Shown here one piece after another: positions 5,400-61,679 of a stretch of DNA of 64,000 bases. The notes beneath the pieces were generated by a model. It searched no databases, had not been told where the DNA came from, and was given only the letters and a program-made list of their open reading frames with translations. Positions within the stretch are counted from its first letter, which is position 1, and every line of letters begins with the position of its first letter. The position numbers were made by a program, and so were the translations under genes. The stretch covers positions 186,001 through 250,000 of the IMG/VR virus record IMGVR_UViG_3300020810_001156. One strand, given 5' to 3'.

Positions 5400-6269
5400 A
5401 TGGCAAAAGTAAGTTTTTCACAATATCAACTATATTCATCTTGTCCTCGTGCATATAAACTGAGGTACATAGATAAGTTGGGTGAATCATCTGCTAACAT
5501 TTATACAATCTTCGGAACAGCTATCCACGAAACCATACAACATTTCCTTTCAGTTATGTATGGAGTTTCGAAAAAACAAGCTATGGAAATTGATACCGAT
5601 AAGTTGTTGTTAGAATGGATGCGAAAAGAATACATCAAAGAGAACGAAAAGTTGACGGAAGGGAGTGTATGTACTCAGTTGGAGTTAGAAGAGTTCTATG
5701 GTGATGGTAGAAGAATATTAGAATGGTTTAAAAAGAAATTAGATAAGTTTTACACAAAGACTGGTTTTGAATTGGTAGGTATTGAATTACCCCTAAACGC
5801 AAAAGTAAAGGAAGGTGTAAACTTCATCGGATTTGTGGATATCGTAATGAAAGATTTATCAGATAATTCAATCATCATTATTGATTTGAAAACATCAACA
5901 ATGGGTTGGAACAAATACGCTAAAGCTGATAAATACAAAAACGCTCAGATTGTTCTTTATAAGAAATACTATTCAGAACTATTCAATGTTCCTTTAGATA
6001 AAATCAAAGTTGAATATCAGATTATGAGGAGAAAACTCTATGAGGATGCTCCTTTCCCAATTCCTTATATGTCTAGGCATGTACCTGCTAATGGTAAACC
6101 AACTGTAAACAAAGTTTATAATGAGTTTATGGGATTCGTTAATGAGGTATTTGATGATGAAGGTAAGTTCAACGATTTGCCTTATCCAAAGGTGCCGGGT
6201 GAACGGAAAAAGAATTGTAAGTTTTGTGAATTCCTTCAAAGAGGAATTTGTGATGGAAATCCATCGTAA
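5400..6269 (+). CDS. PD-(D/E)XK exonuclease, RecB/Cas4-like with a probable Fe-S cluster
   Basis: SFSQ..CP, GTAIHE, GFVD, IIDLKT, and C-terminal CKFC...C. Confidence 0.85.
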   Translation: MAKVSFSQYQLYSSCPRAYKLRYIDKLGESSANIYTIFGTAIHETIQHFLSVMYGVSKKQAMEIDTDKLLLEWMRKEYIKENEKLTEGSVCTQLELEEFYGDGRRILEWFKKKLDKFYTKTGFELVGIELPLNAKVKEGVNFIGFVDIVMKDLSDNSIIIIDLKTSTMGWNKYAKADKYKNAQIVLYKKYYSELFNVPLDKIKVEYQIMRRKLYEDAPFPIPYMSRHVPANGKPTVNKVYNEFMGFVNEVFDDEGKFNDLPYPKVPGERKKNCKFCEFLQRGICDGNPS

Positions 6270-22265: not shown

Positions 22266-22289
22266 CCCTCTTCGGAGGGTATTGTTTTT
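22266..22289 (+). terminator. Rho-independent terminator
   Basis: CCCTC-TTCG-GAGGG hairpin followed by a T-rich tract. Confidence 0.7.
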
Positions 22290-23254: not shown

Positions 23255-23286
23255 TTTGGATTTTTCCAAAAAATTTCGTATATTAG
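23255..23286 (+). promoter_or_regulatory. Bacteroidota-type promoter with an inverted repeat
   Basis: TTTG-N20-TATATTAG; TTTGGA-tttt-TCCAAA. Confidence 0.75.
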
Positions 23287-23311
23287 TATGTTTATCAAAG
23301 AACAAGAGGAT

Positions 23312-23845: not shown

Positions 23846-23851
23846 AATCTT

Positions 23852-23859
23852 ATATTTAT
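23852..23859 (+). promoter_or_regulatory. Putative late-promoter motif ATATTTAT
   Basis: 5 nt before the ATG. Confidence 0.55.
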
Positions 23860-23864
23860 AGTAT

Positions 23865-24113
23865 ATGATTAGATTAACCGAAATATTGAACGAAGGAAAA
23901 GAACCTGAAATCATTACTCAATTAAGAGATGTATTGAAGAATGGGTATAAAACTCTTAAAGACCCAAAAAGTGGTAAGAGAATGAAAGTGGATACTTACT
24001 CAGCATCTGCAATCGTTGGTGTATATGATAAATTAAATCCATCTAATCAAGAAAAGTTTGTGAAGCAGGGTTTGTTGGGTATGCAATCATTAGCATTTAA
24101 ATTTATAAAATAA
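23865..24113 (+). CDS. Putative head-internal protein
   Basis: Leader MIRLTEILNE; KVDTYSASAIV.VYD.L module. Confidence 0.55.
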   Translation: MIRLTEILNEGKEPEIITQLRDVLKNGYKTLKDPKSGKRMKVDTYSASAIVGVYDKLNPSNQEKFVKQGLLGMQSLAFKFIK

Positions 24114-24114
24114 A

Positions 24115-24792
24115 GTGATTAAGTTAACTGACATATTAAATGAAGATTGTTGGAAGGGCTACAAACAAATTGGTGGCAAAATGAAGAATGGAAAGATGGT
24201 GCCAAATTGTGTTCCTGAATCGGTTGAAGAAAACTCAATCAATGAAGCTTCAATGACTGTTTCAATTGCAAATGTTGTAGATGAACTTTTTCCAAAGGAA
24301 TTCTTTTGGGTTTATAATCCACAAGATAAAGAAAGAGTAAAATCTGTGATTGGTGATTTGGTTAGAACTCTAAATACTTTCTACAAAAAGCAAGGTATTA
24401 AAGTTAGATTTACAGATTCTAATATTAGAATGAAAATGTACACTAAAGAATCGGCAAGAGAGGATTTAACATCTTCAGAGAGATTAGAACTATATAAGTT
24501 ATACTCAAAGGCGATGAAAGCAATGCCACAATCTCCAAACCAAAAAAAGATTATCAAACAAATTAATGTGTTAAGAACCAAAGCTGGTATGAAACCATTA
24601 AAAGAGGTAACTTTGAATGAGATTGGTATTTTTAATATACAAAGTTACACAAAGGGGATTTTACCTGCAGGATATATGGATACAACAACTCCTCAGAAAA
24701 AAGAAAAATATCGTTCAACAGTTAGAGATTTAATGCAAACATTAAATTCTTTTTGGAAAAGAAATAATATACCATTTAGAGTAAGAAAATGA
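24115..24792 (+). CDS. Putative head-internal modular protein
   Basis: Leader MIKLTDILNE, a CWKGY..VPNCVP module, and an internal duplication (DL..TLN.F.K). Confidence 0.55.
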   Translation: MIKLTDILNEDCWKGYKQIGGKMKNGKMVPNCVPESVEENSINEASMTVSIANVVDELFPKEFFWVYNPQDKERVKSVIGDLVRTLNTFYKKQGIKVRFTDSNIRMKMYTKESAREDLTSSERLELYKLYSKAMKAMPQSPNQKKIIKQINVLRTKAGMKPLKEVTLNEIGIFNIQSYTKGILPAGYMDTTTPQKKEKYRSTVRDLMQTLNSFWKRNNIPFRVRK

Positions 24793-25127
24793 TAAAGTTA
24801 GATGATTTATTACATGATATCGTAAACCATCCACTAAACGAAGATTTGAGAAAGTGGTTTGGTAAAGGAAAGACTGGTTCATCATCTGGTGGTGGTTGGG
24901 ATAGATACGGAACTGATGGACAGAAGTTAGGTAAATGTGGCGATGGTGAAGAAGGTGATGCTTATGCAGCTTGTTTATCTAAAGAAAAGGCAGCTAAGTT
25001 AGGACCTAAAGGTAGAGCTGCATTTGTAAAAAGAAAAAGAGCTGACCAAAAGAAAGCTGGTGATACTAAAAAAGGTGGAAATAGAAAAAAGGGTAAGACA
25101 CCTACCTTTTCAAAAACAGGTGCATAA
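24789..25127 (+). CDS. Putative head-internal basic protein
   Basis: Leader MIKLDDLL..PLNE followed by DLRKWFG..GGGW; Gly/Lys rich. Confidence 0.55.
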   Translation: MIKLDDLLHDIVNHPLNEDLRKWFGKGKTGSSSGGGWDRYGTDGQKLGKCGDGEEGDAYAACLSKEKAAKLGPKGRAAFVKRKRADQKKAGDTKKGGNRKKGKTPTFSKTGA

Positions 25128-25138
25128 TTGTTATTTTA

Positions 25139-25399
25139 ATGGGTAAAAAATTAGTTACTATAAAGGTAATAAAGGGAGATATTAATCGAGCTCTTAAAAA
25201 GTTTAAACGAGCGTGTTTTGATTCTGGACACTTACAAGAACTTAGGGAAAGGCAAACATATACTAAACCTAAAACAGTAAGAAGAACGAAAAAGTTAGAA
25301 GCTATCAGAAGGCAAGAGTGGGAAACTTTAAAAGAAAAGATTGATGGTGGGGATACCTCACTAAAATTATCTCCAAGAAAGAAAAAGAAAAAAAGATAA
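25139..25399 (+). CDS. rpsU: Phage-encoded ribosomal protein bS21
   Basis: I.V..GDINRALKKFKR....G.LQELRERQ.YTKP...RR is the S21 signature. Confidence 0.9.
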   Translation: MGKKLVTIKVIKGDINRALKKFKRACFDSGHLQELRERQTYTKPKTVRRTKKLEAIRRQEWETLKEKIDGGDTSLKLSPRKKKKKR

Positions 25400-25402
25400 G
25401 GA

Positions 25403-25410
25403 ATATTTAT
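25403..25410 (+). promoter_or_regulatory. Putative late-promoter motif ATATTTAT
   Basis: 6 nt before the ATG. Confidence 0.55.
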
Positions 25411-25416
25411 TAAGGT

Positions 25417-27903
25417 ATGGCAGATAATGTAAAAATATCAGATTTAACGGAATTAATATCGGGCTCTCTTAGAGATGTTACGATTTTTCCGGTTGTAGAT
25501 GGTGGTGCAACCCAAAAAGCTACATTACTATCTCTACAACAATATCTTGCTGATACTTTAGCAACTGATAGTGAATTAACAGCACAAATTTCTAATGTAA
25601 ATTCTACAATAAATGGATTGGATACAGATGATATAAGTGAGGGTTCAACTAATCAGTATTATACAAACGCAAGAGTTAATCAAATAATTCAAGGATTAAC
25701 AATCATAAGTGGTTCGGGTCAAATTGAAGATTTAGGATTTATTTCTTCAGGTACTAATATTGGACCACTAAATATATTTACAGCATCTTACTACGAAGAT
25801 TCTGCATCCTTTGAGACAAGAATTTTAGCAATATCTGCTAGTAGTGGAGATACTACGCCACAAGGAACTGTATCTAGTTCACAACAAATTACCGATTTAG
25901 GGTTTATACAATCATCAACAATTGATTCTTTATTTATTGCAGATAGATTACCAATTGATATTCTATCTTCATCAGAACAATTAGGACAATTAATTGCAAT
26001 TAATGGTGGTACTAATGTAACTGTTACTTCTGGTAGTGGTGACCAATTAAGTATTGAAATTTCATCTACTGGTGGTGGAGGTGGCGGAGTTGAATATGAT
26101 TCTGAATATGAAATCGTTTCACAATCAAACATTACTGATGAATCTAATGCTAGATTGAGTGGTATGTTGATAAGAGCTAATGATGAAACTACATTCGCTA
26201 ACTTCTCAGCATCTGTTGCTGCTGGTGCTGGTGGAGGTGGTGGTTCTACTGATTACATTTCAAATGTATCAAACACAATAGCTCATACAATTTCATTTAC
26301 TGGAGTTGGTTCAGCATTTAATGGAAGTATAAATCTACCCGATGGTATTGTATCATCATCAACTCAAATTGAAGATTTGGGATTTGCTGGTGGTGGAGAA
26401 AACATTATAGTTAGTGGATTACAAGCATATACTCAATCATTAAAATCAGTAGCTATAATTTCTGGCTCACAACAAATTACTGATTTTGGATTCGTTTCAG
26501 AATCATCAACAACTATTCCACAGGGAACTATTTCTGGTTCACAACAAATTACCGATTTAGGATTTCTTAGTAGTTCAGCCGATTTAACTGGTATTACATC
26601 ATCTGCTGGTGTTGTACTTGCTGACGCTGATAACACTGGATTTGATACATCATTTGTAGGAGAGAACCCATCTAACTTATATTATACTGATGCTAGAGTT
26701 GAAACTCACTTAGGGGTTATAGGTTTATTAACAGGTTCACAAGGATTAGCTAGTGGTTCGGTAACTTCATCCGCACAAATTAATTATGGTGAAATTAGAA
26801 ATATTCCTAAATTTTGGGGTGATGGCGTAACTATATCATCTGGTTCATCAGGTGATACTGCAAATTATATCCAAATTACATCAGCTGGTGGTGGTAGTGG
26901 TACATTATCATCCGAGTTCTACTCATTTACCGCATCATATGAATTAGAAAAAGTTAATTTTATAACTGGTTCTTCACAAATTGAAGCTTTAGGATTTGAC
27001 CCTAATGCTGGTGAAGTTGTAACTTTAAACGCTTGGACTGGTTCTGGTGGAGCATTTGGTATATTCTCACAATCAGTAGTAAACCAAATTGAAAACTTAG
27101 AAACTGGTTCACTTACTGATGATTTCAACTCATTATTGGAAAAAGATTTATTCTCAGGTTCTGCTCAAGTTAATTACGCACAAATACCTGATATACCAGA
27201 CTTTGTAGCTGGTCCTGGTATAGTAATCGCAATTAGTGGTAGTTCATTTGGACAAACCTTTGAAATTAGTAGTAGTGCAGCTTCTGGAGATTTTACAACA
27301 TTAACTGGAGTTCCAGAAGGATTAGTATCATCATCAACTCAAATTGAAAATTTAGGATTTGCAACAACTGGATACGCTGATGGTGTTGGTACAACAACTT
27401 CACAATCATTAGAATCAACATTTAATGGATTTAGAGGTGATATAGGTGCTATTCAAGCCGATTACGCTAATTTGGGTGGTAACACATTTACTGGTTCTCA
27501 ATTAATCAAAGCTTTAGTAACAGTTGATGAGGTTTATGTAACTGGTTCATTATCTTTAACTTCTGGTGAGGGTAAAATAAAAGTTAATACTGGGATTCCT
27601 TCGGATATAGTACAAATGACTGGTTCATTTAAAGTAACGGGTTCGATTGAAGCAGATGAGTTTATTGTAGGTTCTGCAGGAACACCAACCATTTCATCAG
27701 CAACTAATATTGAAGTATCGGCATCGGCTGATATTAATATGATAGCTCAGGAAGTTAACATTACTGATGTATTAACAATAACTCCAAGAACAACAACACC
27801 TTCATCACCATCATCTGGTAGTTTTATTGTAAGTGGTAGTGGAGCAACTATAAAGCCATTCTTCTATGATGGCAATCAATGGCAAGAGATATCATTCGTA
27901 TAA
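25417..27903 (+). CDS. Ser/Gly/Thr-rich virion fibre-like structural protein
   Basis: VKISDL N-terminus, EG..N.YYT.ARV repeats, about 10 S(G/S)S.QI.xLGF-type repeats and a FYDG..W C-terminus. Confidence 0.7.
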   Translation: MADNVKISDLTELISGSLRDVTIFPVVDGGATQKATLLSLQQYLADTLATDSELTAQISNVNSTINGLDTDDISEGSTNQYYTNARVNQIIQGLTIISGSGQIEDLGFISSGTNIGPLNIFTASYYEDSASFETRILAISASSGDTTPQGTVSSSQQITDLGFIQSSTIDSLFIADRLPIDILSSSEQLGQLIAINGGTNVTVTSGSGDQLSIEISSTGGGGGGVEYDSEYEIVSQSNITDESNARLSGMLIRANDETTFANFSASVAAGAGGGGGSTDYISNVSNTIAHTISFTGVGSAFNGSINLPDGIVSSSTQIEDLGFAGGGENIIVSGLQAYTQSLKSVAIISGSQQITDFGFVSESSTTIPQGTISGSQQITDLGFLSSSADLTGITSSAGVVLADADNTGFDTSFVGENPSNLYYTDARVETHLGVIGLLTGSQGLASGSVTSSAQINYGEIRNIPKFWGDGVTISSGSSGDTANYIQITSAGGGSGTLSSEFYSFTASYELEKVNFITGSSQIEALGFDPNAGEVVTLNAWTGSGGAFGIFSQSVVNQIENLETGSLTDDFNSLLEKDLFSGSAQVNYAQIPDIPDFVAGPGIVIAISGSSFGQTFEISSSAASGDFTTLTGVPEGLVSSSTQIENLGFATTGYADGVGTTTSQSLESTFNGFRGDIGAIQADYANLGGNTFTGSQLIKALVTVDEVYVTGSLSLTSGEGKIKVNTGIPSDIVQMTGSFKVTGSIEADEFIVGSAGTPTISSATNIEVSASADINMIAQEVNITDVLTITPRTTTPSSPSSGSFIVSGSGATIKPFFYDGNQWQEISFV

Positions 27904-27914
27904 AATAAACACCT

Positions 27915-29525
27915 ATGAGAACCTACAATGTAATACTCAAAAAAGGTGTAGATTATGAATCGTTTTGGGATGATATGGAAAATGAAAACGATGGGGGTAA
28001 TCTTTATATCCCTAATCGTAGAGTAGATTCTCCTAACCTTAGACCAGATTCACAAAGACAAACTTGGTACACTCTTTCGGATGAAGAAGCTGAAACTGTA
28101 AGAAATGATGAAAGAGTTCTTGCAGTTGAAATTCCACCCGAAGATAGGGATGATATCGTAATTGGACATCATGCAATCCAAGAGGGTGTATTTACCAAAA
28201 CAACTTCTGATAGTGGTAATTATCAAAATTGGGGATTAATAAGAACTTTATCTAAATCAAATAATTATGGTAGTTCAAATACCTCACCAACTACTGAATA
28301 TCCATATTCATTAACTGGTAAGGGGGTTGATGTTGTAATTCAAGATAGTGGTATTCAAATAGACCATCCAGAATGGGCAGATAGATTTGAATCGGTAGAT
28401 TGGGATACATGGGGTGCTTTTACACAATCATCAAATCACGATAGAGATTATGATGGACATGGTTCACATTGTGCTGGTATTGTAGCAGGTAAAACATTTG
28501 GGTATGCTAAAAAAGCAAAAGTATATCATCAAAAGATAAGTGGATTAGAAGGTAGTGGTGATAGTGGAACTGGTATTTCACCAACCTATGCATTTGATGC
28601 TATTAAAGGTTGGCATAATGCTAAATCAGTTGACCCAAATACTGGGTATGTTAGACCAACTGTGGTAAATATGAGTTGGGGTTATCTGAGAACATTTACA
28701 AATGCTCAAATATCAAACATAAATTATAGAGGTACTGATTATAGTGGTACTGATATTGATACTACAACTGAAAGAGAAAACAATTACGGATTGATGTATT
28801 CATTGTATTCAGTATCAGGTCCAACATATGCTAGTAATTTAAGAATAGCATCGGTTGATACTGATATTGAAGAGTTGTTAGAAGCGGGTGTTCATGTGTT
28901 TGTTGCTGCTGGAAATAGGAGTAATAAAGTAGATGAGAGTGGTGGTGCGGATTATGATAATAATTATACACACACATCATCGGGTACAACTTACTATCAC
29001 AGAGGTTCTTCTCCATATGGTGATGCAGGGCAAGATGGAACTGGACCAAGAGCAATCATAGTTGGTAATATGGATTCATCAGTACATGATACCACAACTG
29101 ATAGAAAAGCAACATCATCGGAAACTGGACCTGGTGTTGATATCTATGCACCTGGTACAAATGTTATGAGTGCAACTTCTAATACAAATAAGTGGGGAAG
29201 TGGTTCTCAAAATTATTATTTGAATTCATCATTTAAGCAAACTAATATATCTGGTACATCTATGGCATCTCCTCAAGTTGCAGGTGTTGCTGCATGTATT
29301 TTAGAATTATATCCACAATGGACACCATCTCAATTAAAACAATGGTTACTGGATAATGCAGGTTCTGCAATCTTAAATACTGGTACTGATAATGATTGGA
29401 CAAATGATAGAAGTTTGAAAGGTGGAGCAGAAAAAGTATTACATTTACCATTTACTTCATCAGAACCTGCAAAAATAAGTGGTTTCGATAATTTAACCTT
29501 TAACATAAAAATCAAAGAACAATAA
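27915..29525 (+). CDS. Subtilisin-like S8 serine protease
   Basis: Catalytic triad motifs QDSG, HGSHCAG and SGTSMASPQVAG; oxyanion motif AAGN. Confidence 0.93.
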   Translation: MRTYNVILKKGVDYESFWDDMENENDGGNLYIPNRRVDSPNLRPDSQRQTWYTLSDEEAETVRNDERVLAVEIPPEDRDDIVIGHHAIQEGVFTKTTSDSGNYQNWGLIRTLSKSNNYGSSNTSPTTEYPYSLTGKGVDVVIQDSGIQIDHPEWADRFESVDWDTWGAFTQSSNHDRDYDGHGSHCAGIVAGKTFGYAKKAKVYHQKISGLEGSGDSGTGISPTYAFDAIKGWHNAKSVDPNTGYVRPTVVNMSWGYLRTFTNAQISNINYRGTDYSGTDIDTTTERENNYGLMYSLYSVSGPTYASNLRIASVDTDIEELLEAGVHVFVAAGNRSNKVDESGGADYDNNYTHTSSGTTYYHRGSSPYGDAGQDGTGPRAIIVGNMDSSVHDTTTDRKATSSETGPGVDIYAPGTNVMSATSNTNKWGSGSQNYYLNSSFKQTNISGTSMASPQVAGVAACILELYPQWTPSQLKQWLLDNAGSAILNTGTDNDWTNDRSLKGGAEKVLHLPFTSSEPAKISGFDNLTFNIKIKEQ

Positions 29526-29547
29526 CAACTTTTTAGGTTTTTAATAT

Positions 29548-29555
29548 ATATTTAT
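29548..29555 (+). promoter_or_regulatory. Putative late-promoter motif ATATTTAT
   Basis: 7 nt before the ATG. Confidence 0.55.
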
Positions 29556-29562
29556 AGAGTAG

Positions 29563-32034
29563 ATGGGATGGAGTGAGAAATATAAGAAATCAATAGATTG
29601 TAACAACCCAAAAGGTTTCAGTCAAAAAGCCCATTGTGCTGGTAAAAAGAAAAACGAAGATATGGTATTTGAAGAAATAACCGAAGATATTCTAAATGAA
29701 AAGCTGATTACCTATGGTAATAGAAAACCATATGGTCAAGTAGTTTTTATGGCAGGTGGAGCTGGTAGTGGTAAAGGATTCGCTATCAAAAACTTTGTAG
29801 ATTCTGCATCTTTCAAAATTAGAGATGTGGATGAAATGAAGAAACAACTTCAAATTCTCAATAGATTAGGTAAATTAGATATTAGAAGTATCCTAAAAAA
29901 GTATGGTAGAAATATCAAACTTAAAGATTTAGATTTAATCAGAAAGATTGAAAAGGATGGGTACAAACTTCAAAACTTTAATCTTAAAAATCCAGACCAT
30001 GTAATGGCCCTTCACATTTTAGTAAAGGCAATGGGTATTAAAGATAATACTTTAGAAAAACTATTATTGGGTAAAAATAATCCTGAAACTCTTCCAAACA
30101 TTTTATTTGATATCACCGCAAAGGATGTAACCGATATCACTTCAGTTGTTCCAAAATTAAAAGAAGTTGGATACAAAGCAGATAATATTCACTTAACTTG
30201 GGTACTTACAAATTATGTAACTGCAATGGTTAATAATAAGAATAGAGCTAGAATGGTACCTGAGGATATCCTTTTAAAAACACATGAAGGTGCTGCAAAT
30301 ACTATTTGGGGATTAGTAACTAAAGCTCTTCCAAAAGGAATGAATGGTAGAGTTGATGTAATCCTTAATAACCCAGAACACACTGTATTCTATACTGATA
30401 CAGATGGTAAAACTATTAGTGGTGGTGTAAAGGGATTCCTCTCACTTCCACTTAAAAAAGAAAAGGGTGGTATCTTTCCAGAAAAAGTTTGGAAAGATAA
30501 GTTATTCAATTGGGTTAAAGATAATGCACCAGAATCAATCACATCAAATATGAAAGAATCAGTAAACGAAGGTAAGAAATCCAAAGATTCTACCGGTGTA
30601 AGAAAAGCAGAAGCTATTCATAATAATGCAGATACAATCATTGATTTGGTACTTAAAGATAAAAAAGATGTTAAAGAAGTAGTAAGTGTAATGGGGCCTG
30701 TATTGATTAATGCAATAAAAGCAACTTTAAAACATAAGTTCAAACCAATTACTGGTAATGAAGATGCATTAAAAAAGTTTCAATCTAAACTAAAAGATTT
30801 CCTTAAATTCACAGAAGCGTTAGTTAAAAAACCATCAAAGGTTGGTGTTAAAAGACTTGAAACTATGCACAGAGAATGGTGGAATTGGAACCATGGTGCA
30901 GATGTAGTATTAAATGGAAAAATAGGAAATACTATCATTGAATCAGTAAACGAAGGAAAATTCAAACCATCACAAGTTCGTTCAGCAATCTCAAAAGTTA
31001 AAAAAGGACTAATGAGAAAGTGGAAACAAAAAGGTGGATACGAAAACTTTGGACAAAAAGAACTATCTCAAATGAAAGATAAGTTTGATTACAATGCATA
31101 TGGAGATAAGGATGAAAGAGAAATTTCACATATGTTAGATGCATTTGATAATTGGGCAATGAACTACGATGGTAATATGAGAGAAGCAAGAAGGTCAGTA
31201 GTTCACAAAGCTGCAAAGAAAGGAAGTTTTCCAGTATCTTTAGTAGTGGTTAAAAATGGTAAAGTAATTGACCAAGAGTTAGTAAAAACTCCAGAAGCTG
31301 TACCTGCTGCATTTAATGTTATTCAATCAAAACACAAAGGAGCTACTGTTCATATTGAAGATAAAACAGGTAAAAGATTATTTTCAGAATCAATAGATGA
31401 GGGTATGTTCTCCCTTATAGACCAAATCAGAGATGAATCTAAGAATGTTAAAGATTTTATTAAGAATGTTCTTTCTGATAGAAACTTTAAGGATATGAAA
31501 AACGATAAACAATTTATCCAATACTTAGGTTCTATCTATGAATCGGTAAACGAAGCAATGGATATCAATGACCCTATCTTAGTAAGATTGAGAGCATCAG
31601 CGATTGAAAAAGCTGAAAAAGAAAAATTAGCAAAAATAAGAGCAGCCCAAATGAAGAAAAACCAAATGGCTGCTAAAAAACTCCAACAAGCAGAACTCAA
31701 AATCAAAGCACTCAAAAAGAAGAGAGCAGAGGTAATGAGAGATATGGAACAAGAAGCTGAAGCAGAAGGTGGACCAATCGCTGATAGATATGGTAACTTA
31801 TTAAATAAGATTGATAACGATATCATCAAATTGGGAGGTAATCCAATGAGTGAATCAATCGAAGAAAGAATCAATCTATTCGTAGAAGAAAACGTACCAA
31901 CTAAACCAGACAAATGGTCATATGCAGTTTCTCAAGCAAAAGAGAAATTTGATGTATATCCATCGGCATATGCAAATGCATGGGCTTCCAAGAAATATAA
32001 AGAACTTGGTGGTGGTTGGAGAAAGAAAAAGTAA
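29563..32034 (+). CDS. Modular head-internal polyprotein with a P-loop kinase domain (zeta-toxin/PNK-like)
   Basis: Walker A GGAGSGKG and R.R.VP lid; modules separated by ES(V/I)(N/D/E)E linkers. Confidence 0.65.
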   Translation: MGWSEKYKKSIDCNNPKGFSQKAHCAGKKKNEDMVFEEITEDILNEKLITYGNRKPYGQVVFMAGGAGSGKGFAIKNFVDSASFKIRDVDEMKKQLQILNRLGKLDIRSILKKYGRNIKLKDLDLIRKIEKDGYKLQNFNLKNPDHVMALHILVKAMGIKDNTLEKLLLGKNNPETLPNILFDITAKDVTDITSVVPKLKEVGYKADNIHLTWVLTNYVTAMVNNKNRARMVPEDILLKTHEGAANTIWGLVTKALPKGMNGRVDVILNNPEHTVFYTDTDGKTISGGVKGFLSLPLKKEKGGIFPEKVWKDKLFNWVKDNAPESITSNMKESVNEGKKSKDSTGVRKAEAIHNNADTIIDLVLKDKKDVKEVVSVMGPVLINAIKATLKHKFKPITGNEDALKKFQSKLKDFLKFTEALVKKPSKVGVKRLETMHREWWNWNHGADVVLNGKIGNTIIESVNEGKFKPSQVRSAISKVKKGLMRKWKQKGGYENFGQKELSQMKDKFDYNAYGDKDEREISHMLDAFDNWAMNYDGNMREARRSVVHKAAKKGSFPVSLVVVKNGKVIDQELVKTPEAVPAAFNVIQSKHKGATVHIEDKTGKRLFSESIDEGMFSLIDQIRDESKNVKDFIKNVLSDRNFKDMKNDKQFIQYLGSIYESVNEAMDINDPILVRLRASAIEKAEKEKLAKIRAAQMKKNQMAAKKLQQAELKIKALKKKRAEVMRDMEQEAEAEGGPIADRYGNLLNKIDNDIIKLGGNPMSESIEERINLFVEENVPTKPDKWSYAVSQAKEKFDVYPSAYANAWASKKYKELGGGWRKKK

Positions 32035-38611: not shown

Positions 38612-38673
38612 AAAATAATTCACAAAAAGCTTGCATGTTTCAATAATTATTTGTATATTAGTACTGTAATTGA
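38605..38673 (+). repeat. Early-type promoter repeat, copy 1
   Basis: TTATTAAAAA(A)TAATTCACAAAA.GCTTG-N20-TATATTAGTACTGTAATTGA. Confidence 0.8.
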
Positions 38674-38680
38674 TTGAGAT

Positions 38681-38917
38681 ATGAATAATAATACACTACT
38701 TACCAACGCTGTAAACCAAATGATTATCAACGGATTTCATAAATTGGAATCAGTTGGATGTTTATTGGATTCAGATGTTGGTTCTGTTTATCCTATGAAT
38801 GAGGATGGAACTCCTGATTGGAATTGTGAAATTTCCCTTATCGATGATGAGGTAAATTCTGAATGGTGGGAAGCTCTTTCCCCAGAAGATTACAAACTTT
38901 GTAAAGAATTTTATTAA
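38681..38917 (+). CDS. Small acidic hypothetical protein
   Basis: 78 aa, flanked by the two promoter repeats. Confidence 0.65.
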   Translation: MNNNTLLTNAVNQMIINGFHKLESVGCLLDSDVGSVYPMNEDGTPDWNCEISLIDDEVNSEWWEALSPEDYKLCKEFY

Positions 38918-38978
38918 AAATAATTCACAAAAGGCTTGTATATGTCAAAAATTATACATATATTAGTACTGTAATTGA
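38911..38978 (+). repeat. Early-type promoter repeat, copy 2
   Basis: Near-identical to copy 1 outside the spacer. Confidence 0.8.
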
Positions 38979-39007
38979 GAGATAAGTTAAAACCTAAAAC
39001 AAATAAT

Positions 39008-41125
39008 ATGAGTAAATACGGAAATTCTTCTTACTGGTTGCAAGATTGGGAAGATGATGATATTGTAGTTGATACGATGACCGATGTAGAGAAGAAATCA
39101 CATGACCTCTACAAATTATCAGCTGGTAAACGAGCTATCTCAAACTTCGTTAATATCGTTACCAATGATTCCATTCCAGTAAAATTCAACACTAGAGGTG
39201 ATTCCTACACCGATGGTAAATCAGTAGTAATTGGTTCTAATATTGTAGAACCTAAAGATTTCGATATCGCTGTTGGTTTGGCACTGCACGAAGGTTCACA
39301 CATCAAACTTTCAGATTTTAATGTTCTAAGAGATATTTACAATTTGATTCCCGATTATGTAAAGGATGGGGCAATCAAAAAAGGTATTTACAATGTAACC
39401 TCAGTAATCAAAGATATTTGGAATGTGATTGAGGACCGAAGAATTGATAGATTCGTATTTGATTCGGCTCCAGGTTATAGAGATTACTACCGAGCAATGT
39501 ACGATAAGTACTTCAACGATAAGTTGATTGATAAAGGATTACTTTCAGATGAATATACTGAAGAGAGTGTTGATTCTTATATGTTCCGAATTATCAACCT
39601 TCACAACAAAAATACTGACCTTAACGCTTTAAAGGGGCTTAGAGAGATTTATAAGGTAATTGGGTTAGGTAGTATAGATAGATTAAAAAACACCTCAGAT
39701 TCCTTTGAAGTGGCTCTAAAGGTATTCCAAATCATTATGAGTAACTTACCATCGGCTGAAAATGGTGAAGGTGAGGGTTCTGGTAATGGTGACCAGAACG
39801 AAGAACTTCAACCTCAGAATTCTGAAGGTAATGGTGGTAATAGTTCTGATGAGCCAAGAGAGATGACTGATGAAGAGTTCGAAGATTTTTCAAATGGAAT
39901 GAATGGTTCAGCTCCTTCTGGTGGTGGTGATGATACTCCAACTGGTGGTAGTGGAATGAATGTTGATAATATGCCCGATGAGATGGGTGGTAACCCATCT
40001 AATTCATCATCTAAGGGTGGTAAAGAAGTTGAAAAGGTAAAACTATCAGATAGACAAAAAGACCTTCTTCAAAAGAAGATTGAAAAACAAAAGAAGTTTA
40101 TGGATGGTGATATTCGTAAGAAAACCATCTCTAAAAAAGATAATGATAACCTTCAAGCAATTGATGAGAGTGGTTCTGAAGCAGTAACTGTTGGACAGAA
40201 TATTGAGCAAGGTTGGGGAAGTGTTTCCAAAGGTGTTCAATGTATTGTGGTTAAGAAATTAACTCAATCACTATTGGAATCAGAAATGTTCCCAATGACT
40301 TACAATAACTATTGGAATACTTCTGAAGAGGGTGTAATCAAACGATATAACGAAAAAGAAGTAATCGAAGGTATCAAACTTGGTACTATCTTAGGTAAGA
40401 AACTTCAAGTAAGAGGTGAAGATAGAAACACAATCTTTAATCGCCAGAAGCATGGTAAGATTGATAAGAGAATGATTTCTTCTTTAGGATTTGGTAATGA
40501 GAATGTTTTCTCTTACATTGAAACTGATTCTTACAAAAAAGCTAATCTTCACATCTCAATCGATGCTAGTGGTTCGATGAATGGTGATAAGTGGAATAAG
40601 ACTATGACTAATGTGGTTGCACTTTGTAAGGCAGTTGATATGATTCAGAATCTTTCAATTCAGGTTTCATTTAGAACTACTTCACAAAATACTCCTTACA
40701 TTGTGATGGCTTATGATTCTAAAGTAGATAAGTTCTCTAAAGTAAAAAAGATGTTTCCAACACTTAATCCTGGTGGAACTACTCCTGAGGGGTTATGTTA
40801 TGAAGCAATTATGAAAAACTTTTTGAGTTCTAACAATGATATGGATTCATACTTCCTTAATATTTCAGATGGTGAACCTTACTTTGGTACTACTGGAATG
40901 TACTACTCTGGTGATATCGCTTTCAATCACACTAGAAAAATGGTGAAGCAGATTGAGGGAATGGGAATCAAAACTCTTTCTTACTTTGTAGAGACTTGGG
41001 TAAAAGAAGGTGGTGAACCATCCGATGGATTTAAGAAGATGTATGGTAAGGCAGCAAAACTGATTGATGTAACCAATGTTGCTCAGATTACCAAAACAAT
41101 GAATCAACTATTTTTAACAAAATAA
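39008..41125 (+). CDS. VWA-domain protein with an N-terminal HExxH metallopeptidase-like domain (CobT-like)
   Basis: LALHEGSH, N.IED.RI, acidic linker, MIDAS DASGSM, GGTTP and ISDG.P. Start at the ATG at 39008. Confidence 0.85.
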   Translation: MSKYGNSSYWLQDWEDDDIVVDTMTDVEKKSHDLYKLSAGKRAISNFVNIVTNDSIPVKFNTRGDSYTDGKSVVIGSNIVEPKDFDIAVGLALHEGSHIKLSDFNVLRDIYNLIPDYVKDGAIKKGIYNVTSVIKDIWNVIEDRRIDRFVFDSAPGYRDYYRAMYDKYFNDKLIDKGLLSDEYTEESVDSYMFRIINLHNKNTDLNALKGLREIYKVIGLGSIDRLKNTSDSFEVALKVFQIIMSNLPSAENGEGEGSGNGDQNEELQPQNSEGNGGNSSDEPREMTDEEFEDFSNGMNGSAPSGGGDDTPTGGSGMNVDNMPDEMGGNPSNSSSKGGKEVEKVKLSDRQKDLLQKKIEKQKKFMDGDIRKKTISKKDNDNLQAIDESGSEAVTVGQNIEQGWGSVSKGVQCIVVKKLTQSLLESEMFPMTYNNYWNTSEEGVIKRYNEKEVIEGIKLGTILGKKLQVRGEDRNTIFNRQKHGKIDKRMISSLGFGNENVFSYIETDSYKKANLHISIDASGSMNGDKWNKTMTNVVALCKAVDMIQNLSIQVSFRTTSQNTPYIVMAYDSKVDKFSKVKKMFPTLNPGGTTPEGLCYEAIMKNFLSSNNDMDSYFLNISDGEPYFGTTGMYYSGDIAFNHTRKMVKQIEGMGIKTLSYFVETWVKEGGEPSDGFKKMYGKAAKLIDVTNVAQITKTMNQLFLTK

Positions 41126-41141
41126 ATGAAAAATAAATGAG

Positions 41142-41191
41142 AAAAGGCTTGCATGTTTCAAATCTTTTTCTTATATTAGTATAGTAATTGA
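41142..41191 (+). promoter_or_regulatory. Early-type promoter repeat, copy 3
   Basis: AAAAGGCTTG-N20-TATATTAGTATAGTAATTGA, followed by the stem-loop TGGGAG-agaaa-CTCCCA (41193-41209). Confidence 0.75.
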
Positions 41192-41238
41192 GTGGGAGAG
41201 AAACTCCCAAAGTTTAAAACCCTAAAATAATAAAAGTT

Positions 41239-42450
41239 ATGACAGATTTTAAAATTGGTTTTGTAAAGAATGAAGTTTATAAGGTGGAGGCCTTTGGTAA
41301 CTCATTTAAACTGATTGATACTAAAGGTACGAAAGTTGGTACTTTGGGTATCGGAACTGGTACTCGTAAGAGCGCCTATGAGAATGGAGAAGCTCTCCAA
41401 GCTTATGTTCAAAAGAATGGTAAGAAAGTTTACCGAAAAGTTGGTATGGATGTTTACAACAACTTAGTTGCTCCGATGGCTACCGAAAATGGTGGTGTTC
41501 AATTCGAAGATAAATCGGACCATACGGCTATTAAAGATTTTATCCACAAAGGTTCAGTAAACCTTAAACCAACTGAGTTGGTGATGACTGAACTAAAGTG
41601 GAAGTATCTCATCAGAAGTGCGGTGAGAGCTAAGAATATTATGATGACAGGACCTGCTGGTTGTGGTAAAACTATGGCCGCTAAAGCATTGGTTAAAGCA
41701 CTTGACCGTCCTGATTTTTACTTCAACTTAGGAGCAACGCAAGACCCGCGAGCTACCCTAATTGGTAACACACAATTCGATTCTAAGAATGGTACTTACT
41801 TCTCAGAATCATCATTCATCAAAGCAATCAAAACTCCAAACGCAGTTATCCTATTGGATGAGTTGAGTAGAGCTCACCCTGATGCTTGGAACATTTTGAT
41901 GACCGTTTTAGATGGTGGACAACGATACATCCGATTGGATGAAGCAGAAGGTTCACCAATTGTGAAAGTTGCTGAAGGAGTTACCTTCATCGCTACGGCT
42001 AACATTGGTAATGAATATACATCGACCAGAGTTATTGACCGAGCGATTCTTGACCGATTCGTTACCATTGAAATGGATGTTCTAAATGATGAGCAAGAAT
42101 TTGGTTTGTTGAAGTTTATGTTCCCTGAGGTGAACGAAGAAGATTTAAAAGCTGTAGCGGAAATCGCACACCATACTCGAACTCAATCGATGAGTGATAG
42201 TGGTAAAGTTACAGCAATGGTTTCCACTCGTGCTAGTGTTGAGATGGCTGGATTGATTTATGATGGTTTCGATTTATTCGAAGCAGCTGAGATTTCAATC
42301 TTCCCATTCTTCTCTAACGATGGTGGAGTTGATTCTGAAAGAACTTACATTAAGCAGTTAGTTCAGAAGTATGTGAAAGATGAGGGTGAAGCTCTCTTCA
42401 ATGAGCAGGAAACCGAAACGAATTCGGAAGATGAGATTCCGATGTTTTAG
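41239..42450 (+). CDS. MoxR/CbbQ/CobS-type AAA+ ATPase
   Basis: GPAGCGKT, LLDELSR, IATAN, D.AILDRF and STR. Confidence 0.92.
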   Translation: MTDFKIGFVKNEVYKVEAFGNSFKLIDTKGTKVGTLGIGTGTRKSAYENGEALQAYVQKNGKKVYRKVGMDVYNNLVAPMATENGGVQFEDKSDHTAIKDFIHKGSVNLKPTELVMTELKWKYLIRSAVRAKNIMMTGPAGCGKTMAAKALVKALDRPDFYFNLGATQDPRATLIGNTQFDSKNGTYFSESSFIKAIKTPNAVILLDELSRAHPDAWNILMTVLDGGQRYIRLDEAEGSPIVKVAEGVTFIATANIGNEYTSTRVIDRAILDRFVTIEMDVLNDEQEFGLLKFMFPEVNEEDLKAVAEIAHHTRTQSMSDSGKVTAMVSTRASVEMAGLIYDGFDLFEAAEISIFPFFSNDGGVDSERTYIKQLVQKYVKDEGEALFNEQETETNSEDEIPMF

Positions 42451-45693: not shown

Positions 45694-47034
45694 ATGATAA
45701 CACCCTTTTCGGTATTAGATACTCGAACAAAGGAATGGAAGAAAAAGAAAGAAGAGTGGATTGCTACCTACGGAATTCAATCTGAGTTAGGTAGGGAGGA
45801 TACCCAATCGAAAACCCAATTTTGGGATTCTCCAACTAACGTTTCTATTTTTGACCCGGTTCTTTGTGAAGTAATGTACGATTGGTTCGTACCGAAGGGT
45901 GGAAAAATCCTAGACCCATTTGCTGGTGGAAGTGTAAGAGGAATCGTAGCTGAAGAAATGGGGTACAAATATGTAGGTATCGACCTTTCTAAAAAACAAA
46001 TCCTTGCAAATCAAAAACAAAGTTCAAAACCCTTTTGGATTGATGGAGATGCTGATAAAGTTCTCTTTAATTTAGAAGGTGGATTCGATTTTGTATTTAC
46101 CTGCCCTCCTTATTATGATTTAGAAGTGTATTCGGATTCTCCTTATGATTTATCGAATATGAAAGAAAAACAATTTGATGATAAATTGGATTCTATCATT
46201 TATAAATCTGCTCTGAAGTTGAAAGAGAACCGATTTTTTGGGATTGTGGTAAGTGAGGTGAGAAATCCTTCAACGACTGGGAATTATTCCATAGGTAATT
46301 ATAGAGGATTGGTTTGGAAAACAATAAAGATGTGTGAATCACACGGATTGAAGTTCTATAATGATATGATATTATTCAATTCCCAACATCAGGCATCTCG
46401 AGTAGGTAAAACTTACTTTGAAAGAAATAGAAAAATACCATCAGTACATCAAAATGTATTGATATTTGTTAAGGGGAATCCCGATATTGCTACCGAAGAA
46501 ATCAAAGGTGGTGAGTTTGAATGTCAAGTAAAGGGTACAAAATACTTGACTTTCAGACACGCTGCTATTTCAATCGACCCAAACAAATTAGTTGCTTCTG
46601 AAGTTAAAAGAAGATGTGTAAGTAGAAAATCAAAATATAAAGATTGGCAGATAATTGGTGAGGAGACTCGACCAGAGATAAAATATGTTATAGGAGATAT
46701 TCCATTTGAATCACCTTTACAAGTTTTGGAAGTTATTCCTGAATTAACTGAATCACAATGTAGAAATTACTTTGAATCAAACTCTAAGAAGTTTCAACAT
46801 TGGAAAAGAGTGAATCCATCGGATTGGAATATATCTTATAAACAAATGGAGGATTTATGGAATTTATCTGATAAAGCAGGTGGAATAAGTATTTACTCCG
46901 AAACCATTCAATGTGGTGATAAAAAATTCATTTCAGTTAACGAAGCTGCAAAGGAATTTGGAATAAGTGGAGAACGAGTTAGACAAAAGTTAAGGTCTGA
47001 TAATTATAAAGACTGGAAATATTTGGATAATTAA
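45694..47034 (+). CDS. DNA amino-methyltransferase with C-terminal NUMOD1/HTH-like repeats
   Basis: LDPFAGG and TCPPY; three C-terminal repeats ending in K.W. Confidence 0.8.
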   Translation: MITPFSVLDTRTKEWKKKKEEWIATYGIQSELGREDTQSKTQFWDSPTNVSIFDPVLCEVMYDWFVPKGGKILDPFAGGSVRGIVAEEMGYKYVGIDLSKKQILANQKQSSKPFWIDGDADKVLFNLEGGFDFVFTCPPYYDLEVYSDSPYDLSNMKEKQFDDKLDSIIYKSALKLKENRFFGIVVSEVRNPSTTGNYSIGNYRGLVWKTIKMCESHGLKFYNDMILFNSQHQASRVGKTYFERNRKIPSVHQNVLIFVKGNPDIATEEIKGGEFECQVKGTKYLTFRHAAISIDPNKLVASEVKRRCVSRKSKYKDWQIIGEETRPEIKYVIGDIPFESPLQVLEVIPELTESQCRNYFESNSKKFQHWKRVNPSDWNISYKQMEDLWNLSDKAGGISIYSETIQCGDKKFISVNEAAKEFGISGERVRQKLRSDNYKDWKYLDN

Positions 47035-47053
47035 AATAAATTTCGTATATTTG
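47022..47053 (+). promoter_or_regulatory. Bacteroidota-type promoter
   Basis: TTTG-N20-TATATTTG; shares ATTTGGATAATTAAAA with the promoter at 1649. Confidence 0.8.
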
Positions 47054-47071: not shown

Positions 47072-49048
47072 ATGAAAAAAATATTGGTAATTATGTTGAG
47101 TATGGTGAGTATTTCCCTATCTGCTCAACAAAGTGATACGACTATCGTATTAGATGATGTAGTAATAACTGCTACTAGAAGTGAGATAAGTTTGGAAGAT
47201 TCACCCGTACCAACGGAAGTGATTGGAAAGAAAGAGATTGAAGAACTAAATTTAATTACGATGCAAGACCTCCTTAATTTAAAAGGATTTGTTGCACCGA
47301 TGAAAAGTGGAGGTTTCCAATTAAGAGGATTATCTTCCGAATATGTTTTAGTAATGATTGATGGAGTTCCAATCGCAGGTAGAGAAAGTGGTGCATTAGA
47401 TATCTCGAATATCAACCTTGCAAATGTGGAAAGAGTTGAAATTGTAAAAGGTTCAATGTCTGCACTTTGGGGTAACCATGCAATTGGTGGTGTAATCAAC
47501 ATCATTACAAAGAAGAGTGGAGAACCATCTATAATGTTGAATACACAATATGGAACAAACAACACATCATTAGTTGGATTAACTTCAACAGTGGGTAAAG
47601 ATAAATTTAAGAACATATCTAAGATTACATTAGGAAGTTCAGATGGTTTTGATATCGACCCATTAACTTATGGTCAAAATCAATTACCATTTAAGTTGTT
47701 GAATATTACCAATAGAACTACTTACGATGATGGAACGAACCAATACTCATTAGGATTAACTCACTTAGGAAAAACATCCGAAGGTGAAACTGTAACTGAA
47801 ACAAATACTCAGGGGCAATTAGTACCAGTTGATGAGGTAAACGAATCCCAAAACTTTATTGTTGATTTGAACTACAAAAGAAGTTTTGGTAAATATGTGA
47901 GTGAGATTAAAGTATCTAATTCAAACTTCAGTAACTCAAACAAATCTTCTTTTGAATATTTCGGACAACAAGTAGTTCAGTTAGATGAGAGTGACCAAAA
48001 CATTTTCCAACCTGAGATGATTAACAATTACAATTGGAATTCTAAAAACTCAACTACATTTGGATTTGGTTATAGAGGACACGATTACGATACTGAAAGA
48101 TATGGTGGTGATAAATCTCTAAACTCTTACTTTGGATATGTTCAACATTATCTAAACTTAGATAAACTAAATTTAGTAGTTGGTGGTAGATACGATAACT
48201 ATTCAGATTTTGGAAACAACTTCTCACCAAAAGTATCTGCAACTTATGATTTGGGGAAATTCAAATTGAGTTCATCGGTTGGTTATGGATTCAGAGTACC
48301 TGATTTTAGAACCTTATACATTAACTATGGTGGATTCTCATCTGGGTATTGGGTATTAGGTTCGTATAACATTGAAGAACAAATCAATTTTTATTCTCAA
48401 CAAAATCTAATTGCATTTGTATCTTATGGATTAGAAGATATTACTCAACTAAGTCCTGAAACTTCTATCTCATATGATTTTGGTGTATCGTATAAATTAA
48501 ATGAGAGTAGTAAAGTAGGATTAAACTTATTTAGAACCAATACAACTGATTTGATTGAATCAGTTCTTGCTGGAATGTTTGTAAACCAAACTTTACTTTT
48601 TGGATACACAAATATCTCAGAAGCAACATTTACAGGTTTAGAGTTTGAAACTTTGATTCAAAAAGATAGATTTAGATTTGATGGTTCTTATCAGTATTTA
48701 GAAACTGAAGCAAATAAAGCAGATGGAACTGAATTCTTTTTGGGTGAAAGACCTAAACATTTAGTTAACCTTGCAACTACTTATACATTGAAGAATGGTT
48801 TATCATTAACTTTAAATGGAGTTCATAAATCAGAGTACTTCTTTAGAGATGTTGATAGAAGTGGAACTCAGGACGCAAATGAGTTTGTACCTTCTCACAC
48901 ATTGTTGAATACTTTGATAAGTTCTCCTGTTGTTAAGAATATGACAGTTGGTGTTGGTGTTAACAATATTTTAGATTTTACTAATGTAGAGTATCTAAAA
49001 CAACAAAATGGTAGAACCATTTTTGGAAAAGTAACTTATAAATTTTAA
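47072..49048 (+). CDS. TonB-dependent outer-membrane receptor
   Basis: Signal peptide, TonB box LDDVVITATR, plug motif VERVEIVKG.MSALWG..AIGGVINIITK, GGRYD, and C-terminal VTYKF. Confidence 0.95.
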   Translation: MKKILVIMLSMVSISLSAQQSDTTIVLDDVVITATRSEISLEDSPVPTEVIGKKEIEELNLITMQDLLNLKGFVAPMKSGGFQLRGLSSEYVLVMIDGVPIAGRESGALDISNINLANVERVEIVKGSMSALWGNHAIGGVINIITKKSGEPSIMLNTQYGTNNTSLVGLTSTVGKDKFKNISKITLGSSDGFDIDPLTYGQNQLPFKLLNITNRTTYDDGTNQYSLGLTHLGKTSEGETVTETNTQGQLVPVDEVNESQNFIVDLNYKRSFGKYVSEIKVSNSNFSNSNKSSFEYFGQQVVQLDESDQNIFQPEMINNYNWNSKNSTTFGFGYRGHDYDTERYGGDKSLNSYFGYVQHYLNLDKLNLVVGGRYDNYSDFGNNFSPKVSATYDLGKFKLSSSVGYGFRVPDFRTLYINYGGFSSGYWVLGSYNIEEQINFYSQQNLIAFVSYGLEDITQLSPETSISYDFGVSYKLNESSKVGLNLFRTNTTDLIESVLAGMFVNQTLLFGYTNISEATFTGLEFETLIQKDRFRFDGSYQYLETEANKADGTEFFLGERPKHLVNLATTYTLKNGLSLTLNGVHKSEYFFRDVDRSGTQDANEFVPSHTLLNTLISSPVVKNMTVGVGVNNILDFTNVEYLKQQNGRTIFGKVTYKF

Positions 49049-54545: not shown

Positions 54546-55127
54546 GTGAAAAACCTAATAGTAATAGGACATCCTAACAAAGATTCATTTTGCTATAATG
54601 GTATTATGAAAACCATTAAACGGGAACTTCGTAAACACAATGAACCAATCAAAGTTATTGATTTGTATAGAGATTCCTTTGCGAGACCAAGAACCGATTT
54701 GGTTAAAAGATATCAAGAATTAGTAACTTGGTCAGATAGAATTTATTTTATCTCACCAGTTTGGTGGTTTAGATTAACTCCACGAATGGAAGTATTCTTT
54801 GATGAAGTATTCACACCAGGATTTGCTTATAACTTTGTAAACATTACAAAATTATATGCTTATCCTAAACCACATTTAAGTGATAAAAAAGTTAGAACTT
54901 ATATCACACATGGAGCACCTTCATTACCAGTTAGAACTTTGTATCTTAACTCAGTCAAACTAAGATTGGTGTTGGGTGTATTTACTTTTGTATTTGGTTG
55001 GAAGTTGGGTAGATGGAGAAAAACTAAACAATTTTGGTCAGTACCATTTGTATCTGATGAAAAGAGAAGAAAGTACTTACAACGAGTTAAAAAAGATGTT
55101 AGAAAAGATTTAAAGTTTGAAATATGA
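54546..55127 (+). CDS. Flavodoxin-like NAD(P)H-dependent oxidoreductase (Flavodoxin_2)
   Basis: GHPN..SF, IDLY, PVWWF...P....FFD.VF.PGFAY. Confidence 0.85.
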   Translation: MKNLIVIGHPNKDSFCYNGIMKTIKRELRKHNEPIKVIDLYRDSFARPRTDLVKRYQELVTWSDRIYFISPVWWFRLTPRMEVFFDEVFTPGFAYNFVNITKLYAYPKPHLSDKKVRTYITHGAPSLPVRTLYLNSVKLRLVLGVFTFVFGWKLGRWRKTKQFWSVPFVSDEKRRKYLQRVKKDVRKDLKFEI

Positions 55128-58880: not shown

Positions 58881-59171
58881 ATGGCAAATATTGGTAAACC
58901 CCTTGCAGATAGGGTTCTTCTTAAATTAGAAGATGTATCTGAATCAAAATCAAGTGGTGGTATTATACTCAACACAACCACACAAACCATTCAAACTGCG
59001 GAAGTAGTTGAAGTATCCGATGGATTTATTGGAAACAATGGTGAATTAATCAAATTAAGTGTAAATAGAGGTGATAAAGTTCTCATCAATAACGGAGCTG
59101 GGCAAAAGGTAAAGTTAGATGGAGTAGATTATCACTTAGTTAGAGAATCAGAAATTTTAATGGTAGTATAA
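58881..59171 (+). CDS. groES: Co-chaperonin GroES
   Basis: KPLADRVL, S.GGIIL, V..GDKVL and RESEIL. Confidence 0.95.
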   Translation: MANIGKPLADRVLLKLEDVSESKSSGGIILNTTTQTIQTAEVVEVSDGFIGNNGELIKLSVNRGDKVLINNGAGQKVKLDGVDYHLVRESEILMVV

Positions 59172-60800
<1,629 letters not shown>

Positions 60801-60920: not shown

Positions 60921-60937
60921 ATATAAAGGAGGATATT

Positions 60938-61373: not shown

Positions 61374-61442
61374 TTTTGGAATTCCGATGTTTTTGAAAAG
61401 GGAGAAGTTATATCGACTTTAATTAAAACAAAGGAGAACATT

Positions 61443-61679
61443 ATGGACTTTCTTAAAAAGATTGGCTCTTGGGCTAATCAACTTGTAGAAGTAGGTACAA
61501 CTCTAATTGCATTAGGTGTAGTTTTTGAAGTACTATTTAAAGGGATGAGCATTCCGTTCTGGCCAAACATTTCTGTAGTAGATAATATTATGGGAATCAT
61601 CGGTGGATTATCTGCTGAAGGATTGGTTGGATTAGTAGGGGCATTCGTTCTTTACCACATCCTTAAAAAGAAGGATTAA
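61443..61679 (+). CDS. Small hydrophobic membrane protein
   Basis: LIALGVV.EVLF.G..IPFW and GLVGLV; AAGGAG Shine-Dalgarno. Confidence 0.75.
   Translation: MDFLKKIGSWANQLVEVGTTLIALGVVFEVLFKGMSIPFWPNISVVDNIMGIIGGLSAEGLVGLVGAFVLYHILKKKD

Follow-up and report, generated by a model that had tools for sequence, protein, structure and literature searches.

A 253-kb salt-marsh phage that uses Bacteroidota-type promoters was found to encode a ribosomal protein bS21 with two arginines at the positions where the bS21 of its inferred Bacteroidota hosts carries the residues that hide the anti-Shine-Dalgarno (anti-SD) tail of the ribosome. In four complete genomes with this type of bS21, SD-like motifs were absent from the first genes behind early-type promoters and present on a subset of those behind late-type promoters. 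That the phage retunes host ribosomes is a hypothesis consistent with these data and has not been shown, as nothing here demonstrates that the protein enters ribosomes.

The analysed window comprised 64,000 nucleotides, bases 186001-250000 of a single 252,603-bp contig (IMG/VR record IMGVR_UViG_3300020810_001156, rated 100% complete) with 33% G+C and about 97% of ORFs on one strand. A tRNA scan found no tRNA genes, and a near-identity DNA search of the phage collection found no match. PHROG matches identified a distant T4-like myovirus, with the large terminase at genome position 94612, the portal at 97004, a gp23-type capsid protein at 105614 and a baseplate wedge at 55028. The ORF at window positions 25139-25399 (+) encodes 86 amino acids and is unambiguously bS21. 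It matched Pfam PF01165 Ribosomal_S21 (E 4.9e-15, 55.4 bits against a cut-off of 27, profile positions 1-54 of 55), TIGR00030 (1.3e-12, 47.4 bits against a cut-off of 28.95) and phrog_21469, and it is the only PF01165 match in the genome. The phages encode no bS18 or bS6. The protein is rich in Lys and Arg, and 24 PDB bS21 chains matched it at E below 0.01. An AlphaFold2 model (mean pLDDT 72.8) gave predicted helices at residues 15-27, 30-37 and 47-69, the last of which was confidently modelled, followed by an unstructured tail. The C-terminal extension GGDTSLKLSPRKKKKKR (residues 70-86, 25346-25396 (+)) lies beyond the length of cellular bS21 and ends in KKKKKR, as noted in the preliminary description. 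The divergent tail is not peculiar to this phage, however, as a conserved ILEKIxxGDxxLxL plus poly-Lys extension is shared by the whole viral family.

A word search returned 200 homologs of 86-124 amino acids, all PF01165 and mostly from marine or aquatic metagenomes, while a scan of IMG/VR found 100 loci, of which 80 were retained. The family has its own signature motifs (KGDINRAL, SGHLxELRER), and these were not carried by any genome among 185,579 prokaryotic species, so the family appears to be virus-specific. A second scan of the same species genomes with the phage GroEL, intended to provide a handle on the host lineage, also returned no confirmed relative.

The position equivalent to Tyr54 of Flavobacterium johnsoniae bS21 was identified by chained alignments. 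[quoted passage not shown] Arg57 and Arg58 of the window protein (codons AGA AGG, 25307-25312 (+)) therefore correspond to Tyr54 and Ile55, confirming the preliminary description, which had placed an Arg at the tyrosine position. An ungapped alignment to E. coli bS21 places Lys54/Arg55 at these positions, so that the phage reads A-I-R-R-Q, E. coli A-V-K-R-H and F. johnsoniae A-A-Y-I-Q. In F. johnsoniae Tyr54 stacks on A1534 and Ile55 packs against the 16S 3' tail; the tyrosine is conserved across the phylum as a signature, and the Bacteroidetes C-terminus is less basic than that of other phyla (PMC7797042). Among the 80 viral relatives 73 have Arg and 7 have Tyr (for example KAIYIQK in loci L057-L059). 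A tree of the family was poorly resolved at its base, requiring at least two changes of state without revealing their direction.

There is no direct link to a host, but the transcription signals suggest a member of the Bacteroidota. K-mer enrichment in intergenic DNA revealed TTTG-N20-(TTTCG)TATATTTG, which is the -33 TTTG / -7 TAnnTTTG architecture of Bacteroidota primary promoters. TTTG-N18-21-TAnnTTTG occurs 25 times on the coding strand against 3.6 in shuffles, with a spacing mode of 20. One example (TTTGG-N20-TATATTTG) lies at 47013-47053 (+), with its -7 element at 47046-47053, before the TonB-dependent receptor gene, and further copies have their -7 element at window positions 1673, 5374, 32059 and 43014. 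Three complete relatives with the same bS21 type, G001 (276 kb), G002 (271 kb) and G003 (289 kb), contain 8, 25 and 12 coding-strand copies of the strict form, with 0 in the reversed-pattern control. Sigma-70 -35/-10 sites were not enriched (46 against 50.2). The capsid protein is 52% identical to that of Flavobacterium phage vB_FspM_immuto, the nearest cultured relative, and 39% identical to that of Rhodothermus phage RM378.

A second motif, TATATTTATA without a -33 element, precedes genes of the structural module, next to the terminase and portal genes, the adaptor-like gene and the baseplate and tail region. This class-2 motif was treated as late-type by analogy with TATAAATA of T4, which is an inference. 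The bS21 gene lies in such a unit, headed by TATATTTATA at 23851-23860 (+) and running from 23865 to 29525 with no convincing + strand terminator between. The ATG at 23865 follows the motif by 4 nt, so this first gene looks leaderless. A class-1b promoter-like site of the Bacteroidota sigma-A type (TTTG-N20-TATATTAG) lies at 23255-23286 (+), just upstream of the ORF at 23288, and an intrinsic-terminator-like hairpin CCCTCTTCGGAGGG followed by a T-run closes the preceding unit at 22266-22289 (+). Immediately downstream of bS21 is an 828-aa Gly/Ser-rich repeat protein (25417-27903 (+)), which is fibre-like but has no family match, followed by a 536-aa subtilisin-like protein with weak tail-fibre PHROG matches (27915-29525 (+); phrog_9158 8e-79, phrog_3677, phrog_15006), the last gene of the unit. 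The next TATATTTATA motif is at 29547-29556 (+), 6 nt before the ATG at 29563, again a leaderless-like arrangement. In relatives L016 and L025 the late-type motif sits directly in front of bS21. The claim of the preliminary description that bS21 lies among late genes is thus supported only indirectly, and the gene, at genome position 211139, is more than 100 kb from the terminase, portal and capsid genes at 94.6-107 kb. Its further suggestion that some late-type genes are leaderless is plausible, without transcription start data, for 6 of 36 genes whose ATG lies 1-6 nt after the late-type motif. Contigs from four independent metatranscriptome runs cover the gene, although with contigs alone DNA carry-over is not excluded and no timing, strand or 5' ends are given.

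The leaders of this phage are A-rich (A 0.43-0.60 and G at most 0.19 at positions -14..-3), and most lack an SD. When SD use was first measured as overall anti-SD pairing energy no enrichment was seen, with pairing of -4.4 kcal/mol or stronger at 14% of starts against 16.6% at random positions; the signal appears only when motif position and promoter class are considered. The two strong SD sites highlighted in the preliminary description are real: AAGGAGG at 60926-60932 (+), 5 nt before the ATG at 60938, and AAGGAG at 61431-61436 (+), 6 nt before the ATG at 61443, are the second and third strongest anti-SD pairings in the genome (-11.6 and -8.7 kcal/mol). They belong, however, to a 117-aa secreted protein and a 78-aa membrane protein of unknown function located just after GroES/GroEL, neither of which has a Pfam or PHROG match that would make it a recognisable late gene. 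Both sites are poorly conserved, the G003 ortholog of the first having only AGGA and the G001 ortholog of the second AAGGAA. There is nonetheless a sharp positional peak, with SD-like 5-mers starting at -13..-11 in 20 of 273 genes against about 2 expected. By transcription unit, SD-like motifs occur in 19/113 late-type genes against 8/156 early-type genes (p 0.002), and for the first gene behind a promoter the counts are 7/32 against 0/33 (p 0.005). Depending on the definition, 83-94% of genes in late-type units still lack an SD-like element.

The same crude ORF caller was applied to all genomes, and gene starts and promoter classes come from this caller and from regular expressions. Core SDs (GGAG/GAGG) at -14..-8 compared with upstream control windows numbered only 13 against 8.0 (1.6x) in this genome (G000), 30 against 7.0 (4.3x) in G001, 10 against 6.7 (1.5x) in G002 and 29 against 6.3 (4.6x) in G003, all of which are Arg-type. 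The Flavobacteriia phages immuto and Colly_1, which have no bS21, gave 3 against 9.7 (0.3x) and 5 against 7.3 (0.7x), the partial sequences of LR756504 (Tyr) and LR756508 (Met) gave 2 against 2.3 (0.9x) and 3 against 4.0 (0.8x), and phage RM378, which has no bS21, gave 16 against 1.7 (9.6x). Across the four Arg-type genomes the first gene behind an early-type promoter had an SD-like motif in 0/105 cases, whereas behind the late-type motif 43/156 did (p 2e-11). Immuto uses the same TATTTATA motif but has 0/40. SD-like presence is conserved on orthologs at 54-67% amino-acid identity (G000-G001 10 of 11, p 2e-6; G001-G003 p 6e-11), and on the capsid, adaptor-like and 769-aa and 162-aa tail-module genes the sequence changes while complementarity and spacing are kept. 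The orthologs in immuto and LR756508 lack these elements (12 to 1 and 9 to 0). In the roughly 12-kb flanks of bS21 across IMG/VR, 122/538 genes next to Arg-type bS21 (23%) have an SD core against 1/74 (1%) next to Tyr-type (p 7e-7). The Arg-type genomes are related to one another, so these counts are not independent. Furthermore, G004, a 57-kb fragment of a sister phage with Tyr-type bS21, is syntenic with window positions 5400-62288 (61 reciprocal best hits, 66% identity, with the ortholog of the 828-aa protein again following bS21) and has 5 SD-like genes in the shared region where this phage has 2, although the fragment does not include the structural module.

The best-supported reading, which remains tentative, is that the gene encodes a virus-specific bS21 variant made from a late-type transcription unit of a jumbo T4-like myophage infecting a member of the Bacteroidota. 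The protein would bind the bS21 site of host 30S subunits through its conserved N-terminal helices, with Arg57/Arg58 replacing the Tyr54/Ile55 that hold the 3' tail of 16S rRNA in the platform pocket. Such ribosomes would keep the general role of bS21 in initiation but have an accessible anti-SD, favouring the subset of phage late mRNAs carrying short SD-like elements (AGGA, GGAG, AAGGAG) 6-9 nt before the start codon. Published work makes this biochemically plausible: in F. johnsoniae Y54A or other pocket mutations free the anti-SD tail and raise translation of SD-bearing mRNAs (PMC9976891, PMC13000457), with Y54A raising output from a strong-SD reporter by 70% in vivo and 3-fold in vitro while SD-less translation is unchanged (PMC9976891). 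However, Y54A ribosomes initiated worse on a weak-SD mRNA, large gains needed very long SDs, and the natural autoregulatory SD forms a 13-bp helix that actually excludes bS21. The early/late split of SD-like elements within genomes that use Bacteroidota promoters is hard to explain if the host ribosome were unchanged. The interpretation of the preliminary description, that the phage bS21 frees the anti-SD and retunes initiation toward late mRNAs, is partly supported, while the host phylum, late timing, release of the anti-SD and any translational benefit are inferred, and incorporation into ribosomes, displacement of host bS21 and any effect on leaderless mRNAs are purely inferred. A broader possibility, considered unlikely but not excluded, is that a widespread clade of aquatic jumbo phages of Bacteroidota reprograms start-site selection during infection, with early genes written in the SD-less dialect of the host and late structural genes carrying short SDs readable only after phage bS21 replaces host bS21, which would constitute a virus-made specialised ribosome acting as a temporal switch.

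A less likely alternative is that the phage simply supplies bS21, a loosely bound and late-assembling protein, to keep ribosomes initiation-competent after host shut-off or to out-compete host bS21 through its Lys-rich tail. In this case Arg57/Arg58 would only add rRNA affinity and the SD-like motifs would be an independent lineage trait. Phage bS21 is widespread in phages of many hosts and this general model is the published one (PMC9723584, PMC9976891). F. johnsoniae ribosomes lacking the bS21 C-terminal region translate SD-less mRNAs 2-fold worse, the basic tail is conserved across the viral family, and both the many late-unit genes without SD-like elements and the counts in G004 fit this view. 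It does not explain the difference between the flanks of Arg-type and Tyr-type loci, the absence of SD-like elements behind early-type promoters and in bS21-less immuto, or the replacement of both tail-contact residues by the residues found in SD-using bacteria.

It is more doubtful that the purine-rich AGGAG/AGGA elements are not SD sites but part of the late transcription-start region or the binding site of another phage factor. In G001 and G003 the motif often appears as a fixed TATTTATA-N6-12-(A/T)AGGAGA arrangement, the recurring AGGAGA extends beyond perfect anti-SD complementarity, and in many relatives the bS21 gene itself has AAGGAGA abutting its ATG, a spacing useless for SD function. 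Against this, the motif is positioned relative to start codons, 18 of 23 SD-like genes in this phage have no promoter motif within 110 nt, and orthologs vary the sequence but keep anti-SD complementarity and spacing. Host mimicry, in which a Bacteroidota or FCB host already lacks Tyr54 and reads SDs to some extent, draws on the absence of Tyr54 from Chlorobia bS21, the SD excess of RM378, the lack of an identified host and the best PDB scores being to gammaproteobacterial bS21, but appears the least likely reading given that the signature motifs were absent from the cellular genomes scanned, that the complete lack of SD-like elements on first genes behind early-type promoters would be unexpected, that promoter type, G+C content and nearest cultured relative point to Flavobacteriia-like hosts, that RM378 lacks the TTTG/TAnnTTTG enrichment, and that family members with KAIYIQK show the Bacteroidia signature within the same family and synteny.

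Phage-encoded bS21 is the commonest viral ribosomal protein, and its late expression and the substitution model have already been published. What is new is the Arg-for-Tyr54 family in phages with Bacteroidota-type promoters and its association with late-gene SD-like sites, neither of which was described in any paper found in the literature searched. The bS21 proteins of freshwater Bacteroidetes-infecting jumbo phages (Chen et al. 2022, PMC9723584) are likewise encoded by large myophages predicted to infect Bacteroidota, are expressed or placed with late genes, have clade-specific C-termini and are proposed to substitute into host ribosomes. Those proteins all keep an aromatic residue at position 54 (54 of 61 Tyr) and their genes sit next to the terminase, capsid and portal genes on the reverse strand, whereas the gene described here encodes Arg, is distant from the head genes and is on the common coding strand; release of the anti-SD would also explain why this family differs from the Tyr-keeping phage bS21. 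LR756508, the closest capsid relative, has the Chen-like position 2 kb from its capsid gene, but with Met at this site. The bS21 of Pelagibacter phage HTVC008M (Mizuno et al. 2019) comes from a different host phylum in which no anti-SD sequestration issue arises, and it was not retrieved by tblastn at E 1e-3. The bS21 of E. coli and other gammaproteobacteria (many PDB entries, e.g. 8rd8) has a basic pair at the equivalent positions, a basic C-terminal helix and the best sequence scores in the PDB (4.6e-8 to 5e-7), and on those ribosomes bS21 coexists with a short SD-anti-SD helix, but it is only about 35-45% identical over about 50 residues. The F. johnsoniae protein and its Y54A, delta-C and pocket mutants (PMC7797042, PMC9976891, PMC13000457) share the same family and the same helix, and the laboratory mutants remove the contact that the phage protein naturally lacks. 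The cellular protein is 64 amino acids long, less basic, and its own mRNA carries a very long SD used for autoregulation, whereas the phage gene, preceded by caggtgcataattgttatttta ATG, has no SD at functional spacing and encodes a 17-residue Lys-rich extension.

A 658-aa TonB-dependent outer-membrane receptor, containing Plug and beta-barrel domains together with a signal peptide, is encoded by the phage at window 47072-49048 (+), which is an unusual auxiliary gene. The gene lies behind an early-type TTTG-N20-TATATTTG promoter, the -7 element of which is located at 47046-47053. An ortholog of 660 aa with 71% identity is present in G004, the syntenic sister phage fragment. A GroES/GroEL pair is encoded at window 58881-59171 and 59175-60800 (+) and was identified by matches to phrog_3188 (1.9e-18) and PF00118 (1e-75). 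Flavobacterium phage immuto has one as well, while a scan of genome contigs using the GroEL found no close cellular relative. A VWA-domain protein of 716 aa is encoded next to a MoxR-type AAA+ ATPase of 403 aa at window 38975-41125 and 41239-42450 (+), a pairing that is typical of MoxR-VWA chaperone systems. Outside the window, the structural region of the same phage genome contains four giant ORFs of 4828, 4590, 3866 and 2802 aa, at genome positions 110811-125297, 126219-139991, 142082-153682 and 75880-84288.

A promoter variant, GCTTGCATGTTTCAAA-N-TATATTAGTACTGTAATTGAG, was observed at window 38654-38690, 38959-39008 and 41172-41240 and at genome positions 14984, 39733 and 182158. The variant is followed by near-identical long leaders (…GAGAGATAAGTTAAAACCTAAAACAAAT), giving a repeated 5' leader element of unknown function.

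The gene that directly follows bS21, at window 25417-27903 (+), encodes an 828-aa Gly/Ser-rich protein with repeated 'SGSQQITDLGF'-like units and no family match. The metatranscriptome contigs revealed variant forms of this gene, with two runs showing a joint that skips 26084-26224. When the region upstream of bS21 was compared among the viral relatives, about half of the distinct relatives (loci L016-L036, L047-L060 and L081, at about 5975-6000 in each locus), including complete phage G001, were found to have a conserved GTTACAyTAAATwAGGAGA that abuts the ATG; the SD-like core is only 1 nt from the start. This may be a regulatory element reminiscent of host rpsU autoregulation, however it is absent in the window phage.

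The sister fragment G004 (IMGVR_UViG_3300031658_003389, loci L151-L153) is 57 kb in length and is syntenic with window 5400-62288, with 61 reciprocal best hits at 66% identity, but it carries a Tyr-type bS21 ('KAIYIQK'). The bS21 proteins are only 55% identical, which is below the genome average. The uncultured 484-kb phage LR756508.1, which has the closest capsid protein (56% identity), contains a 79-aa bS21 (locus L168:1489-1728, at about 169.7 kb) located 2 kb upstream of its capsid gene. This protein has Met at the Tyr54 position, giving a third state besides Tyr and Arg. Rhodothermus phage RM378 (loci L176-L182) shows a strong SD excess of 16 against 1.7 (9.6-fold) and no TTTG/TAnnTTTG enrichment, and SD-blindness therefore does not extend to phages of Rhodothermus.
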